Shown: piece after piece, positions 4,301 through 25,033 of the stretch
How the letters are laid out: each line of letters starts with the position of its first letter
How positions within the stretch are numbered: position 1 is the first letter of the stretch
NCBI GenBank assembly: GCA_054661495.1
Contig: BAAFSQ010000081.1
Span: 6,651 to 38,650, forward strand
Origin: Zygophlyctis sp. KS116
Lineage: Eukaryota > Fungi > Chytridiomycota
Direction: 5' to 3'
DNA: 32,000 nucleotides
Position numbers and translations under genes: made by a program
Notes under the pieces: generated by a model
Seen by the model: only the letters and a program-made list of their open reading frames with translations
What the model was told of the DNA's origin: nothing
Databases searched by the model: none

Positions 4301-6877
4301 GCTCTGGAGCTTATGGAACGATAACATGTGAGCCAAAAAATATCGATTTTGGAGTGATTTTGGTAAATACGGTCTGTGAAAAGGAGATAATTCTGTACAA
4401 TTCTAGCGAATGTGACTTGAATTACACTCTGGGAATACTTGAGCAGCAGGAAGAAGGCGTATTTTCAAAGATCGAATCTAATTCAAAAAGTTTTATTCCT
4501 CCAAATCTAAGCGTTTGCTCAAGCATTCCCTTGGAATGCCTTTCAGCGTCCCAATATATATCAGAGATTTTGCCAGCGCGATCAAAACAAGTTTTGAAAC
4601 TCCGGGCTCAACCAAAGGAGAATCGAATTTATAACTTTAGACTGTTTTATTCTCTTGTGGCAAAAAATAGTGATTCAAATGATGAATCTCCTCTTAATTT
4701 AATATGTGATGTTTTGGCTAAAGGAGTTCAGCCCTTGGTACAAATTATGGATGTAAAATCAGAAGGCTGGAGTAAATCTATTTTATGGAGACTACTTTCC
4801 TTAGACTTATTAAATTCTTCATTAAGATCCATCAGTACTGATCCAATGGCATATGCTGAATTCTCTATTGACAAGCCGATGCAGACTAATATAGGAGATG
4901 GTTTTAAGAAGGATTTCAAAGAGATAATATCATTTGATTTTGGAGCTGCCCAAGTCGGATACCACCCAACAAGTATTAGCCTGGTTTTGAAAAATGATGG
5001 ACAAGTGCCTGTCGATTGGGGATTCTATTTTCCTAATGATTTACAAGTTGATTTGGAAGAATGGGCTGATTCAGGTGAATATACAGAAGATCAGCTTCAC
5101 GAAAATTTAATCATTGATAACAATTTATTTCAAATAACTCCAAAAAGTGGGCATTTAGAACCTGGGGAATCAAATCATATTTTGCTCTCGCACACCCACG
5201 AGTTTGCCGGCTTTCATAAATTACCTGTACTTTTTAAGCTCAAAAATGGGTATTCTCGCTCCGGCAAAGAATTACTCATTAATTTTTTTGGCCATTCTGT
5301 AATTAAATCAAAACAGTTCCTGCAAATACCAATATCTCAATATTCATTTGAACCTATTGAGGTAGGGGATACGCACCCGCCGGTGCAGATGTATCGTATG
5401 ATAAACAAAAGCAGCACACCGTTAAAATATGAAGTGGGCGCTAAGGTGCTTGAAACTCTTAAATTAAGCAACTCTGGTTTTGAAATTTTACACTGTGCCA
5501 ATATGAAAGGCGTAATTCCAGCTAATGGTATTGGATTCCTAGAATGGATCTTTCGGCCACTTTCGAATGCCTCCCATAACATCGAAGTCCCTATATCTAT
5601 AAAAAATGGGCAAACAAGAGTCATATCTTTTTCTGCGTCAGGTTATTCAGATGACTTAGAAGTAGCGAAACAGAAGAAAGACCCAAAATTATATCCCGAT
5701 TCTGTACCAATACTTCCAATGCTTGATTTTGTGCGTGAGACTGCAGTACTTTCTCTCGAACGTCTTAATTTTGGGCATTCTCCTTTGGGTGCCTCTTTGA
5801 GACGAATTGTAGTGGTTCAAAATACATCTAATGATTCTGAAATTGTTTTCAGATGGAGAATCCCGGAATTCTGGGAATCAAAAGGTATGGTTTTAATTTT
5901 AAATTGACGATAGTTATTAGAGTTTCTCCGACAACAGGAATTTTGAAGGCGAATGAATCAAAAGTTTGTAAAGTAACATTCTGTCCCAAATTTATACCGA
6001 AAATATATGATCTCGATTTATATTGTGAAATCACCGATAAGAACTGCATGGTAATTTTCTAAATTTTATATTAGGACGAATATTTGGGGAAAAAAGAAAT
6101 TGAAGAGAAAACTCGGAAGGAGATTTTGGACATGGAGGGTGGAGTCATCTCATGTGATGCATTAAATTCTTCCAATAACCTGATTTCTAACTCAGAATTA
6201 AACAAGTATAAAGCTCTTCCGCCAATAGGGGAAAGCAGTTTGCAAGTTAACGATATAAATAGATCAAAGTCTGAAGAATGTAAATATGATTATTTTTTAA
6301 TTGTAGCCATACCGGAAGAAGTCGCTCCTCCCACTTCTTACGACCTGATTCTTACAATCAAAACGAGAACTTATAATTTTGATGATTTCAGAGACAGATT
6401 TCACGGATATGAAGCCTTTCATTTTGAAAAACCCACAATTAGATATACTCCTGTTGACGAAGTTTATGATGATACAGTAAGTTAAAATTACATTCCTTAT
6501 AATAGATCATGATTGATTCCGTCAAAGATGTTATGTTTTCCATTCTTGATAATCTATTCTTGGATCCAGACATTAGAAACATTGTGAATGAGCCTTCGTA
6601 TTTCCCATTTTACGCTCAAATCGTTTCTAACGGTAGAAATGGAATTTTCTCTGAAACAGAGCAAAATAAAACAAAGTCCGGACTAGTCAAATGGAATCCT
6701 TTCAACGATACCGCTGTAGACATTAATCACAAATACAAAAAAATTGACATTCTCAATACATCAGAGTTTCAAAACCTGGCAGAATCTATTTTGGAAGCAA
6801 CAATCTACAATTTGATGCAAGAAGCAAACGCTGAAGAATTCGACATAACAAAATACCCAATGCTTTTCCAAATATAA
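1341..6877 (+). CDS. CFAP65: Cilia- and flagella-associated protein 65 (CCDC108), multiple ASH/MSP Ig-like repeats; about 16 exons
   Basis: Spliced N-terminus WEPGGENVKQLIVKNVLMKTQKIKYKLPKTRYF...LSAGMSWTIPITFRP, plus MRSFRLVND..FTPPWCLT and EEWAD motifs, match CFAP65. Introns: 1511-1537, 1716-1739, 2022-2047, 2258-2286, 2395-2421, 2528-2555, 2828-2850, 3059-3086, 3310-3336, 3884-3910, 4058-4083, 5885-5913, 6051-6074, (6280-6306), 6477-6505. Start may be 1320. Confidence 0.9.
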
Positions 6878-22258: not shown

Positions 22259-23175
22259 ATGAGATTAATAATACTACTTCAACTCATCAAACTCATTCTA
22301 GCAAAGATTGAATTCTTTACGCCGTTTGGAATGTCAAAGACTAAAAGTATTGAATATGAAATTGGAGAGTCTTCTACAAATTCTGGATCAGGACAAACTA
22401 TTCTATATTTAAAGAGAGGAGGAGTTATGAGAGGTCCAGTTAATGTTTATTTAGTTTTCTATGGACAGAATTGGACACCATCAAGAACATTTAAAATTCA
22501 GAATTTTGTAAAGAATATGCATTCTTCATCATACTTTTCAATTATTAAAAACTATAAAGATGAAGTTGGGAATATTACTGGACCATTAATCTTAAAACAA
22601 AGTATTTGGCAAAGTTATGAATATGGATTAAATTTGGATATGTCCGGAATTATTAAGAATCTCCACAATTTGTATCCAAGAGTAGATCCACAGGGAATTT
22701 ATGCTATTTTATCTGATAATCAGACTTCTATTAGTGTATCTGCACAAATTGAACTTTGTAAGGCTTTTTGTGGATTTCATACAATTGTTGGTCAAAGAAA
22801 AGTAAATTAATAATTTTAATATTATAGATTGTAGTCGTTGGGGATGCATCTATTTGTGGTCAATGTTCACCATTCAGAGATTCTCCAAGTTTAGATAAAA
22901 AAGCAGATGCAATTACTAATATTCTAGCACATGAGATTATTGAAACTCTCTCTAATCCGGACACTTCAAATCCATCATACTTGAATGCAAATAATGAAGA
23001 GGTATTTAATCTCTTTTTTAAAAATTAGAATGCAGATATTTGTAATTTTAATATGGGAAAATCAAATCCTGTAGATGCAAGAGGAAATCGTTATAATGTT
23101 ATCGTTGGACATTTGAAATACTATGTACAATCTTATTGGAGTTTATTGTCAAGTGGATGTTCTATGATGGATTAA
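22259..23175 (+). CDS. Secreted Phi-1/EXORDIUM-like protein; 3 exons
   Basis: Signal peptide; GGVMRGPVNVYLVFYG, FCGFH, ADAITNILAHEIIETLSNP, ENADIC, YNVIVG..KYYVQSYW. Introns 22802-22827 and 23002-23028. Confidence 0.8.
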
Positions 23176-23237
23176 TCAGTTTTTGTATTATAAACAATAA
23201 ATTTAAGTTCAACCAGTAAGACTACTAGAAGCGTTAG

Positions 23238-23309
23238 TATGCATCAGAATATCAACAGATTGTAATCATTTTTCATGTGAAACACGGATAAGAATTCATC
23301 ATTTGCATA
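23238..23309 (-). ncRNA. Box C/D snoRNA U18 (snR18/SNORD18)-like
   Basis: Terminal stem UAUGCA/UGCAUA, box C AUGAUGA (23302-23296), guide UCCGUGUUUCA complementary to LSU rRNA UGAAACACGGA, C'-like AUGAUUA, box D CUGA (23247-23244). Confidence 0.85.
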
Positions 23310-23376
23310 ATCTCATTTCAAAAAAAAACAATTTGGTACAATATAAAAAATCTACAGAGTTAGTGATTATGAGAAA

Positions 23377-23466
23377 CTGATCAGATAGTTTGGTAAGTTT
23401 GTACAGTATCAGCACTTTAGATCAGAAGCAGAACTGGCATGTTTTGTACAGTTATCATCACTTCAG
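23377..23466 (-). ncRNA. Box C/D snoRNA snR61 (U38/SNORD38)-like
   Basis: Box C GUGAUGA (23461-23455). 13-nt guide GCCAGUUCUGCUU before D' CUGA (23425-23422), complementary to LSU AAGCAGAACUGGC; the D+5 rule gives the A equivalent to yeast Am1133. C' GUGCUGA, box D 23384-23381, stem CUGA/UCAG. Confidence 0.9.
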
Positions 23467-23509
23467 AATAAAAACATACCTATTATAATTTAAAGAGAAA
23501 CAATATGTG

Positions 23510-23585
23510 AGAGCATCAGTTGGTGGTGCATGTTATTTATCATCATCATATGTATGTAATAATGGATATCATCATCATTTGCTCT
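23510..23585 (-). ncRNA. Box C/D snoRNA snR55 (U33/SNORD33)-like
   Basis: Stem AGAGCA/UGCUCU, box C AUGAUGA (23578-23572), C' AUGAUGA. 12-nt guide CAUGCACCACCA one nt before box D CUGA (23519-23516), complementary to SSU UGGUGGUGCAUG; D+5 gives the U equivalent to yeast Um1269. Confidence 0.9.
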
Positions 23586-23695
23586 AAACTTTTTGTAAAA
23601 AAAAAGAATAAAAGGCCTTGTCCTGGTACTTGAATACTTGTCTGGACTGCCGCACGATTTAACATGGCGACAATTATGGCGTCCGATTATCTAAA

Positions 23696-25033
23696 ATGGC
23701 TTTTACACTAATCAGTCTCTCATGGTTTGCAACAATCATTATGGCTGCTGGATTTGATATCAATGATGTATCTTCAATAAATATCGCTCATAAGGCTACT
23801 GCTGCAAAGTTGATGTCATATTATCAGCCAAACGATAAGGGAACTATCCCTCCAGTTGAATCTGAAGATGAAAATGGATTTCAATGGTTTGAAATGGGTA
23901 TTTATTGGGGTGCAATCATGGAATATACTAATACTTCATCTGATAAGCAATACTTTAATCTGGCGGGTGCCGCCTTGAGCAATGCATCATTTGGTGGAAA
24001 TCTTTCTTTTATTGGAGGGAAAGTGAATGGAAAATGGTCAGATAATATGCACTGGAATGATGATATTCTATGGTGGGGATTTGGAGGTATTTAAATCATT
24101 TCTAAAAGATTAGTTATTCAAGGGGCTGAAATTGAAGGAGTTGAAAGCAAAATGCAGAATGGCTTAAAGTATCTTGATTTAGCTAAAAATACTTTTGATC
24201 AAGTATTTAGTCAATGGGATGATCAATGTGGAGGAGGTGTTTACTGGGCGAGAAATCGAAATGATGAAAAACAAAATCGAAGATTGTACAAATCAACAAT
24301 TTCAAATGTTCAGACTATAATCTTGGGAGTCCGCTTATATCTATTAACATCAGATTCACAATATCTTGATGCAGCTACCAGAATATATACTTGGCTTAAA
24401 GGACCATCAGGGATAGTAACCCCAGATGGTAAAGTATATGATGGAGTATATGCTCGCTTCTGTGATAAAGTTGAAAAAAAGGAGTTTAGTTACAATTCAG
24501 GATTATTCTTGGGAAGTGCTGCATTACTTTTTAATGCTACAAAGAATCCAGACTTTATTAAAGATGCATCTGTAGTATTCTCCAATTTCCAAAATGTATT
24601 TACAATGAACAATACGGTATTCGATCCCTGTGAAGTCTCAGGAACATGTAAAAAGAATCAACCACAATTCAAAGGAGTAGCAATCAGATTTTTACGATAC
24701 TATTATCAAATATCTGCTGATATTGAAATCCGTAAAAATATTTCTAAAATAATTCAAACTTCGGCAGCATCTCTTTCATCGACTTGCAATGAGGAGGGAC
24801 TCTGCAGTAACTTTTGGCTTCCACAAACATCTGATCGTCCACGAAATGTTCACAATCAAATAAATGCATTGGAGTTGTTGAATGCATTGGTAGTGATCAA
24901 AAGAGGCTATTTGTATGAATTCATGAACTTTCTCAAGAAATATTCAACGACTACTGAAAGAAGCGCCAGTAGCGCTAGTAGCATGTATCTACAGGCCATA
25001 TCTTGGGCTTGGGTGTTGCTATTGCTGGTTTAG
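23696..25033 (+). CDS. Glycoside hydrolase family 76 (Dfg5/Dcw1-like alpha-1,6-mannanase/transglycosidase), secreted, probable GPI signal
   Basis: Signal peptide; catalytic WNDDILWWG; intron 24087-24113; WDDQCGGGVYW, YKSTISN, FSYNSGLFL, FKG; Ser/Thr spacer and hydrophobic C-terminus. Confidence 0.9.

Follow-up and report, generated by a model that had tools for sequence, protein, structure and literature searches.

A candidate zero-length exon between two box C/D snoRNA introns in a chytrid-like fungus

Introduction

On the minus strand of the window (i.e., the whole stretch of 32,000 nt that was analysed) a TAG trinucleotide is followed directly by GTATGT, with one box C/D snoRNA on either side. 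The question raised by this arrangement is whether two introns meet here with a zero-length exon between them and are spliced out in turn, with one snoRNA coming from each, or whether the TAG belongs to an ordinary exon, the GTATGT is passed over, or no splicing takes place at all.

Arrangements of this kind have been described from Ascomycota. Complex introns were reported for cluster II (snR57-snR55-snR61) and cluster III (snR41-snR70-snR51) from the Candida clade, D. hansenii, Y. lipolytica and Euascomycetes (PMC5033589; PMC3596301), and complex introns of fungal snoRNA clusters are likewise the subject of Mitrovich et al. 2010, as cited in these two reports. For the snR57-snR55-snR61 host of the Candida clade, Donovan et al. 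described classical splicing next to nested splicing (with a negative exon size) and recursive splicing (with an exon size of zero), whereby the exon sizes within the Candida/Debaryomyces clusters were found to be 1, 0 or negative and a zero-size exon was identified between snR41 and snR70 of D. hansenii (PMC5033589). Luo et al. reported that internal exons were lost at least 61 times from clusters I-III of Hemiascomycetes, Euascomycetes and Archiascomycetes, documented by ESTs and RT-PCR that the introns are removed stepwise in the 5'-to-3' direction, and proposed that snoRNA introns are mobile (PMC3596301). Spliceosome profiling carried out by Chen et al. revealed a zero-length exon within the 336-nt intron of SPNCRNA.445, the snoRNA61 host of S. 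pombe, the splice signals of which are conserved among Schizosaccharomyces species (bioRxiv 10.1101/226894). The preliminary description of the locus had referred to exon shrinkage in snoRNA hosts of some ascomycete yeasts, which is right and understated, as exon-less junctions have been published for the very same cluster (PMC5033589, PMC3596301, bioRxiv 10.1101/226894).

Results

The locus and its three snoRNAs

Three box C/D snoRNAs were identified on the minus strand of a gap of ~500 nt between two plus-strand genes (Table 1), with zero ORFs of at least 60 aa on the minus strand of 23200-23690. SnoRNA 1 possesses a terminal stem of 6 bp (AGAGCA/TGCTCT), a box C (ATGATGA) and a box D (CTGA, 23519-23516), with which the 18S guide CATGCACCACC is in register, whereby the stem and the conserved guide are visible in the Rfam alignment; score, boxes, stem and guide together make it a member of RF00133. 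SnoRNA 2 is a member of RF00476, in which the D' guide CAGTTCTGCTT is followed by CTGA (CAGUUCUGCUU and CUGA in RNA letters), box D is located at 23384-23381 and the terminal stem is CTGA/TCAG. SnoRNA 3 carries the guide TCCGTGTTTC and the terminal stem TATGCA/TGCATA; as its score stays below the gathering score of RF00093 (31.3 versus 41 bits), it is U18-like by its guide UCCGUGUUUC and not a certified member of that family. No alignment was obtained between units 1 and 3 that would identify them as paralogues.

Table 1. Features of the snoRNA locus and of its neighbours. Positions are those of the window; features are ordered from the upstream to the downstream end of the minus strand.
Feature	Position	Strand	Basis or remark
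GH76 glycosidase gene	start codon 23696	plus, divergent from the snoRNA host	Pfam
Candidate intron 1 donors	23624-23637	minus	donor matrix
Duplicated block of 324 nt	23310-23633	minus	98.8% identity to C93:16305-16628
snoRNA 1, SNORD33/snR55 type	23510-23585	minus	Rfam RF00133, 51.6 bits versus gathering score 44
Putative 3' region of intron 1	23483-23513	minus	predicted from reading of the sequence
TAG (23482-23480) abutting GTATGT (23479-23474)	23474-23482	minus	would unite the 3' splice site of intron 1 with the 5' splice site of intron 2
snoRNA 2, snR61/Z1/Z11 type	23377-23466	minus	Rfam RF00476 (match 23466-23378), 50 bits versus gathering score 45
Intron 2 branch site CACTAAC (23365-23359, branch A 23360) and TAG (23354-23352)	23352-23365	minus	
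Micro-exon of 12 nt, ATTTTTTATATT	23340-23351	minus	11 nt in the C93 copy
GTACCA, likely weak intron 3 donor	23334-23339	minus	4.2 bits; followed by T9 at 23328-23320
snoRNA 3, U18/SNORD18-like	23238-23310	minus	Rfam RF00093, 31.3 bits, under gathering score 41
Intron 3 branch site TACTAAC (23239-23233) and TAG (23227-23225)	23222-23239	minus	
Phi_1-domain gene	ends near 23170	plus	Pfam

The snR61-type snoRNA follows directly upon the snR55-type snoRNA on one strand of a non-coding host, which is the order of fungal cluster II. No snR57 was found upstream of the snR55-type snoRNA, where Rfam gave no third C/D match, and the U18-like snoRNA that comes after the snR61-type snoRNA stands in the stead of snR57. 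The distance from snoRNA 1 to the divergent GH76 start codon amounts to only 110 nt. Those GH76 homologues that bear organism names come from chytrids (31-34% identity), and the closest relatives are lake/metagenome contigs. A strain of 99% identity is present in the GROS21 sample series.

Splice signals of introns 2 and 3

Splice signals were scored with matrices derived from 84 confident introns of the window and of 200 kb of other contigs (C1-C5 among them). Ordinary introns are ultra-short in this genome, their lengths peaking sharply at 26-28 nt; their donors follow GTA(A/T)NT, with GTAATT being the commonest donor hexamer, and their acceptors are mostly TAG. The yeast-type motifs are scarce: ACTAAC is four-fold depleted (40 seen versus 159 expected on 464 kb of strand, i.e., 232 kb of genome) and GTATGT/GTAAGT is under-represented (~80 versus 159 expected). 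As snoRNAs 2 and 3 are each followed by ACTAAC and TAG in spite of this depletion, the locus appears to be spliced with its snoRNAs residing just upstream of 3' splice sites, and splicing of units 2 and 3 is predicted with high confidence. The branch sites of introns 2 and 3 are located 8-9 nt from the AG, and the end of the snoRNA is 30 nt away from the AG in unit 1, 26 nt in unit 2 and 15 nt in unit 3. In a genome-wide search the succession box C, box D, ACTAAC was not enriched (4 matches versus 4 in the control).

Intron 2 is thus predicted to comprise 128 nt (23479-23352). The internal exon of only 12 nt that had been claimed downstream of it was found as described, with TAG before it and GTACCA after it. 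GTAGAT at 23355 (4.6 bits), which overlaps the intron 2 acceptor, is an alternative donor for intron 3. At the other end of intron 3, TACTAAC overlaps the terminal stem of snoRNA 3 and a second TAG is located at 23224-23222.

The junction

The minus strand reads ...TTTAAATTATAATAG up to the G at 23480, directly followed by GTATGT, then by the 7 nt TTTTATT and, from 23466 on, by the terminal stem of snoRNA 2; both the contact of TAG and GTATGT and the 13 nt between G+1 of the latter and the snR61-like stem, as put forward in the preliminary description, are exactly borne out by the sequence. The junction is located within the 43-nt spacer that separates snoRNAs 1 and 2, whereby an AG directly precedes a GT and each flanking predicted intron holds one snoRNA, which is the layout of a zero-length exon. 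The donor tagGTATGTTTT at 23479 scores 10.1 bits and hence ranks among the top 5% of true donors. Because donors of at least 10.1 bits occur once per 12.5 kb of strand only (232 kb of genome), which corresponds to a chance of ~0.3% within the 43-nt spacer, GTATGT is almost certainly a real donor, which naturally pairs with CACTAAC...TAG to give intron 2.

Judging the acceptor side is less straightforward. Between the 3' end of snoRNA 1 (23510) and GTATGT no AG exists besides the abutting one; an AG further upstream that would leave a real exon, as considered earlier, is not present in this interval, so that an intronic snoRNA 1 with an acceptor of its own would leave no exon. As the donor consensus carries AG at positions -2/-1 in 25% of the introns (21 of the 84 ordinary donors), the AG alone says little. 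Its context scores 6.3 bits with the acceptor matrix, corresponding to the 25th percentile of true acceptors; among AGs located in sequence of the same AT-richness 23% attain this value, as do 2 of those 21 ordinary donors that carry AG, and the context is only ~3x more acceptor-like than AT-rich background. The context thus reads as acceptor-like but not compelling. After removal of intron 1 the joined caa|GTATGT would score 9.0 bits as a donor.

With a folding energy of -2.5 kcal/mol (z = -0.28) the 43-nt spacer is unstructured, which renders an RNase III-type cut between snoRNAs 1 and 2 unlikely. Apart from the present site and a paralogous copy of 99% identity, the whole 12.7-Mb genome has no match to the pattern box D, AGGTATGT, box C, and the reversed-pattern control gave 0 matches. 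The relaxed pattern box D, YAG|GTA, box C was not enriched genome-wide (17 matches versus 16 in the control). Matches of this relaxed pattern at C99:20620-20672, C269:8928-8970 and C252:10506-10572, all on the minus strand, look like further abutting snoRNA introns (e.g., CTAAT-ACATAG|GTATTT). Tandem C/D boxes were found 43 times genome-wide versus 21 times in the control, and most of these matches are acidic coding repeats. On the minus strand of C110:8730-9201, an snR75-like match of 31.8 bits is located ~300 nt downstream of a tandem C/D match, the box D to box C spacer of which measures only 35 nt.

The upstream end of intron 1

Upstream of snoRNA 1 two candidate donors were identified and no others, each directly preceded by CAA. 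GTATTC (23637-23632) scores 4.4 bits and is missing from the paralogous copy on contig C93; GTACCA (23629-23624) is present in both copies and scores 1.8 bits, which is below the 5th percentile of true donors (3.5 bits). The GTACCA hexamer recurs together with a T9 tract upstream of snoRNA 1 (23629) and of snoRNA 3 (23339), its background rate being 1.6e-4 per nt. As the copy at 23339 aligns to a GTAATT in the contig of a related fungus (Logan SRR23867098_923338, hereafter L034), GTACCA appears to mark a donor position, and by analogy the GTACCA at 23629 is the best candidate for the donor of intron 1, which would then comprise 150 nt.

The T9 tracts (23597-23605 and 23320-23328) start 18 nt past the GTACCA at 23629 and 5 nt past that at 23339, and both are located 8-11 nt upstream of the respective snoRNA (1 or 3). 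U-rich tracts downstream of weak 5' splice sites aid U1 recruitment via Nam8/TIA-1, and the T9 tracts may be such U-rich enhancers of weak donors. Two acceptor-like sites were also observed in this part of the units: TTTAG at 23584, immediately 5' of snoRNA 1, scores 9.9 bits (a value met once per 4.7 kb), and a GAG directly 5' of snoRNA 3 scores 4.0 bits and would close a GTACCA...GAG unit of 28 nt, which is the modal intron length. These sites (within 23584-23601 and 23312-23339) may represent alternative mini-introns or chance.

The putative 3' region of intron 1 is AG-free and contains a weak branch candidate (CTCAC, in which the A at 23508 would lie 28 nt away from the AG), followed by the pyrimidine-rich TTGTTTCTCTTT and by TTTAAATTATAATAG; in its make-up it looks like the 3' ends that short introns have in this genome. 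An ACTAAC-type branch site, as present in introns 2 and 3, is absent from intron 1. The earlier claim that introns 1 and 2 abut without an exon is supported in part. The anatomy agrees with it, with a strong donor at the sole available AG, an Rfam-supported snoRNA on each side and unmistakable branch and acceptor signals after snoRNAs 2 and 3; the candidate donors of the predicted intron 1 are weak, however, and the AG context is only ~3x above background.

A paralogous copy and related contigs

The block of 324 nt that recurs on contig C93 reaches from 4 nt ahead of the first GTACCA to a point shortly before snoRNA 3; it comprises both GTACCA sites, snoRNA 1, TAG|GTATGT, snoRNA 2 and the micro-exon. 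The sequences flanking the block in the window (contig C81) and on C93 are unrelated. On C93 the copy is preceded by an ankyrin-repeat gene (Pfam), starts 35 nt past the stop codon of the latter and is followed by a same-strand ORF. Both copies differ at 4 places, all of them within spacers (three substitutions and a 1-nt deletion in the micro-exon), so the differences avoid the snoRNAs and the splice signals. TAG|GTATGT is identical in both, and the copy is too young to inform on constraint. It looks as if an intron cassette had recently been transposed or duplicated. Because the C93 copy resides in the 3' UTR of the ankyrin gene, this mRNA would escape damage only if snoRNA 1 were intronic, which mildly favours the two-intron reading.

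L034, which stems from a related uncultured fungus, is the only syntenic relative contig, identified via its Phi_1 homologue. It keeps the order OPA3 - Phi_1 - U18-like snoRNA and ends 33 nt upstream of snoRNA 3, i.e., short of the junction. Within the U18-like orthologue (L034, 5456-5523; 26.4 bits with RF00093) guide and boxes are conserved, and over positions 5415-5556 a comparable micro-exon end and donor were found, with GTAATT aligned to the GTACCA of the window (23339); no TACTAAC follows the U18-like snoRNA in this contig. Homologues of GH76 exon 1/exon 2 were available with their DNA from seven loci, none of which carries a snoRNA; these loci probably are paralogues or non-syntenic.

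Scanning genome contigs for an snR55|snR61 junction in relatives yielded nothing, and a pattern scan of metagenomes for snR55-snR61 adjacency gave no match with a spacer of 40-70 nt and, with a spacer of 70-100 nt, one environmental, ascomycete-like contig (Ga0335081_10919463). The minus strand of the latter (400-860) shows a HomolD-like CAGTCACA box and at least 4 snoRNA introns, whereby TAG|GTAGGT, i.e., a zero-length exon, is located between the first snoRNA and the snR55-like one and an exon of 26 nt precedes snR61.

Discussion

Explanations for the junction

On balance, the data lean towards introns 1 and 2 abutting with a zero-length exon and being removed one after the other, thereby releasing one snoRNA each. 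To a similar degree it is favoured that the host is a short non-coding minus-strand gene between the Phi_1 gene and the GH76 gene, which would carry one box C/D snoRNA per intron, with introns 1 and 2 in direct contact. That the AG at 23480 is used, which donor opens intron 1 and which step comes first are inferred from the sequence. In such a host, the AG at 23481-23480 would end intron 1 and the GT at 23479-23478 would start intron 2, and both introns would leave in two separate splicing reactions. If exon 1 was joined first to GTATGT, the resulting caa|GTATGT (9.0 bits) would subsequently serve as donor together with CACTAAC...TAG at 23352, a sequence of events that would represent recursion in the strict sense. 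If intron 2 was removed first, intron 1 would then use the same AG, the upstream context of which is kept. Either order would yield two lariats with one snoRNA each, as required for exonucleolytic maturation, and debranching followed by exonucleases would trim them to the ends protected by the snoRNP. As a by-product, a spliced host RNA would be formed, consisting of exon 1, the 12-nt micro-exon and the last exon.

The main rival explanation, which the preliminary description had not listed and which we regard as rather unlikely, albeit deserving close attention, places snoRNA 1 into an exon, so that cutting or trimming it free would sacrifice the host RNA, while TAG|GTATGT would be an ordinary first donor whose exon side happens to end with AG. 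The transcript would then start just upstream of snoRNA 1, or a mini-intron of 46-54 nt (from GTACCA or GTATTC to the TTTAG at 23584) would precede it. It fits this explanation that a quarter of the ordinary donors carry AG at -2/-1, that the acceptor context exceeds AT-rich background by ~3x only, that the donors upstream of snoRNA 1 are weak and that the 9.9-bit acceptor-like site (met once per 4.7 kb) is located immediately 5' of snoRNA 1 at 23584. Space for exon 1 is scarce as well, as only ~58 nt separate the candidate intron 1 donors from the GH76 start codon at 23696, leaving little room for exon 1 and a promoter, and exonic cluster members do exist, one in Y. lipolytica and all of them in Saccharomyces (PMC5033589). 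However, release of an exonic snoRNA 1 would sever the ankyrin mRNA in its 3' UTR at the C93 copy, the spacer contains no stem-loop for an endonuclease, and the recurrence of GTACCA and T9 at units 1 and 3 would be left unexplained. Moreover, nearly all cluster II snoRNAs outside the Saccharomyces lineage are reported to be intronic (PMC3596301).

The two explanations that dispense with the junction altogether fare worse. The preliminary description had offered as an alternative that GTATGT is skipped, whereby one intron of ~280 nt, beginning with a donor 5' of snoRNA 1 and ending with the TAG at 23352, would leave both snoRNAs within a single lariat. It is true that, past the upstream donor, CACTAAC (23365-23359) is the sole strong branch site and that intron 1 lacks one of its own, but the strength of the internal donor makes skipping very improbable: a 10.1-bit donor has a chance of ~0.3% to occur in the 43-nt spacer and was retained in both copies, and a lariat with both snoRNAs would have to be cut internally, within an unstructured spacer. 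Still more improbable is an unspliced polycistron processed by nucleases only, in which the splice-like motifs would be relics or chance. Polycistronic processing is the rule in Saccharomyces, and the snR75-containing cluster of the present genome has at least one box D-box C spacer of only 35 nt, leaving little room for splice signals; yet the joint chance of finding two ACTAAC and TAG successions after box D (snoRNAs 2 and 3) in an ACTAAC-depleted genome, together with a top-5% donor, is far below 1e-4.

Comparison with known systems

The likeness of the predicted host to ascomycete cluster II comprises the pair and its order (snR55, then snR61), the non-coding host and the tiny neighbouring exons. 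One snoRNA per intron would be kept by abutting introns in the window as it is there, with stepwise removal being documented in ascomycetes. In contrast to ascomycete cluster II, snR57 is lacking at this locus and a U18-like snoRNA follows snR61; furthermore, the snR55/snR61 junction of the Candida species contains a 1-nt exon, whereas the present one would contain none. The exon losses described by Luo et al. relate to three ascomycete groups only and not to early-diverging fungi (PMC3596301).

The mobility of snoRNA introns proposed by these authors invites a far-reaching extension, which we consider improbable. The exon-less snR55/snR61 junction would then not result from late ascomycete degeneration but would either date back to an ancient fungal cluster II host, with both fission yeast and a chytrid-like lineage having kept it, or have been selected repeatedly, and the 324-nt block bounded by GTACCA would be a self-contained, splice-competent two-snoRNA cassette that was recently copied into the ankyrin 3' UTR, as a live example of such mobility.

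Among the closest known systems is SPNCRNA.445, which is also a non-coding fungal host of an snR61 orthologue with a 3' splice site abutting a 5' splice site; its annotated intron measures ~336 nt, the counterpart in the window ~280 nt. In S. pombe both sites were proven by 5'-P/3'-OH spliceosome libraries and RT-PCR, whereas here they are read from the DNA. As for lineage, SPNCRNA.445 belongs to Taphrinomycotina, the window to a chytrid-like fungus with standard introns of 26-28 nt.

Drosophila and vertebrates have introns of tens of kilobases that are spliced recursively at ratchet points, or zero-length exons. The window junction resembles these ratchet points in its pyrimidine-rich tract, in the AG|GTAAGT/GTATGT succession and in the functional 5' splice site that would be regenerated (9.0 bits). 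Unlike ratchet points, which are found in introns of >10 kb, it would divide halves of ~150 and 128 nt, hence the mechanism would be alike without the junction being a member of that class. The selective reason likely is one snoRNA per lariat here and not intron length; moreover, the donor of the window exists before the first step and could act in either order. Stwintrons of filamentous fungi (PMC8469720) are likewise two U2-type introns in direct contact that are removed consecutively. Within a stwintron, however, a splice signal of the outer intron is split by the inner one, so that the order is fixed (PMC8469720), whereas the introns of the window would lie side by side with no signal interrupted.

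Biological meaning

What is new here is the lineage, namely a chytrid-like one, as this kind of junction has already been published, the same cluster included. With mechanism and occurrence in that cluster on record, no new question is opened by the locus. If confirmed, the junction would show that exon-less snoRNA host introns with stepwise splicing are found beyond Ascomycota, in a zoosporic lineage that diverged early, and the rule of one snoRNA per lariat would be upheld even where the intervening exon is gone. The locus would furthermore provide a natural test case for a spliceosome that is tuned to ultra-short introns and has to deal with introns of 130-150 nt with yeast-type signals.
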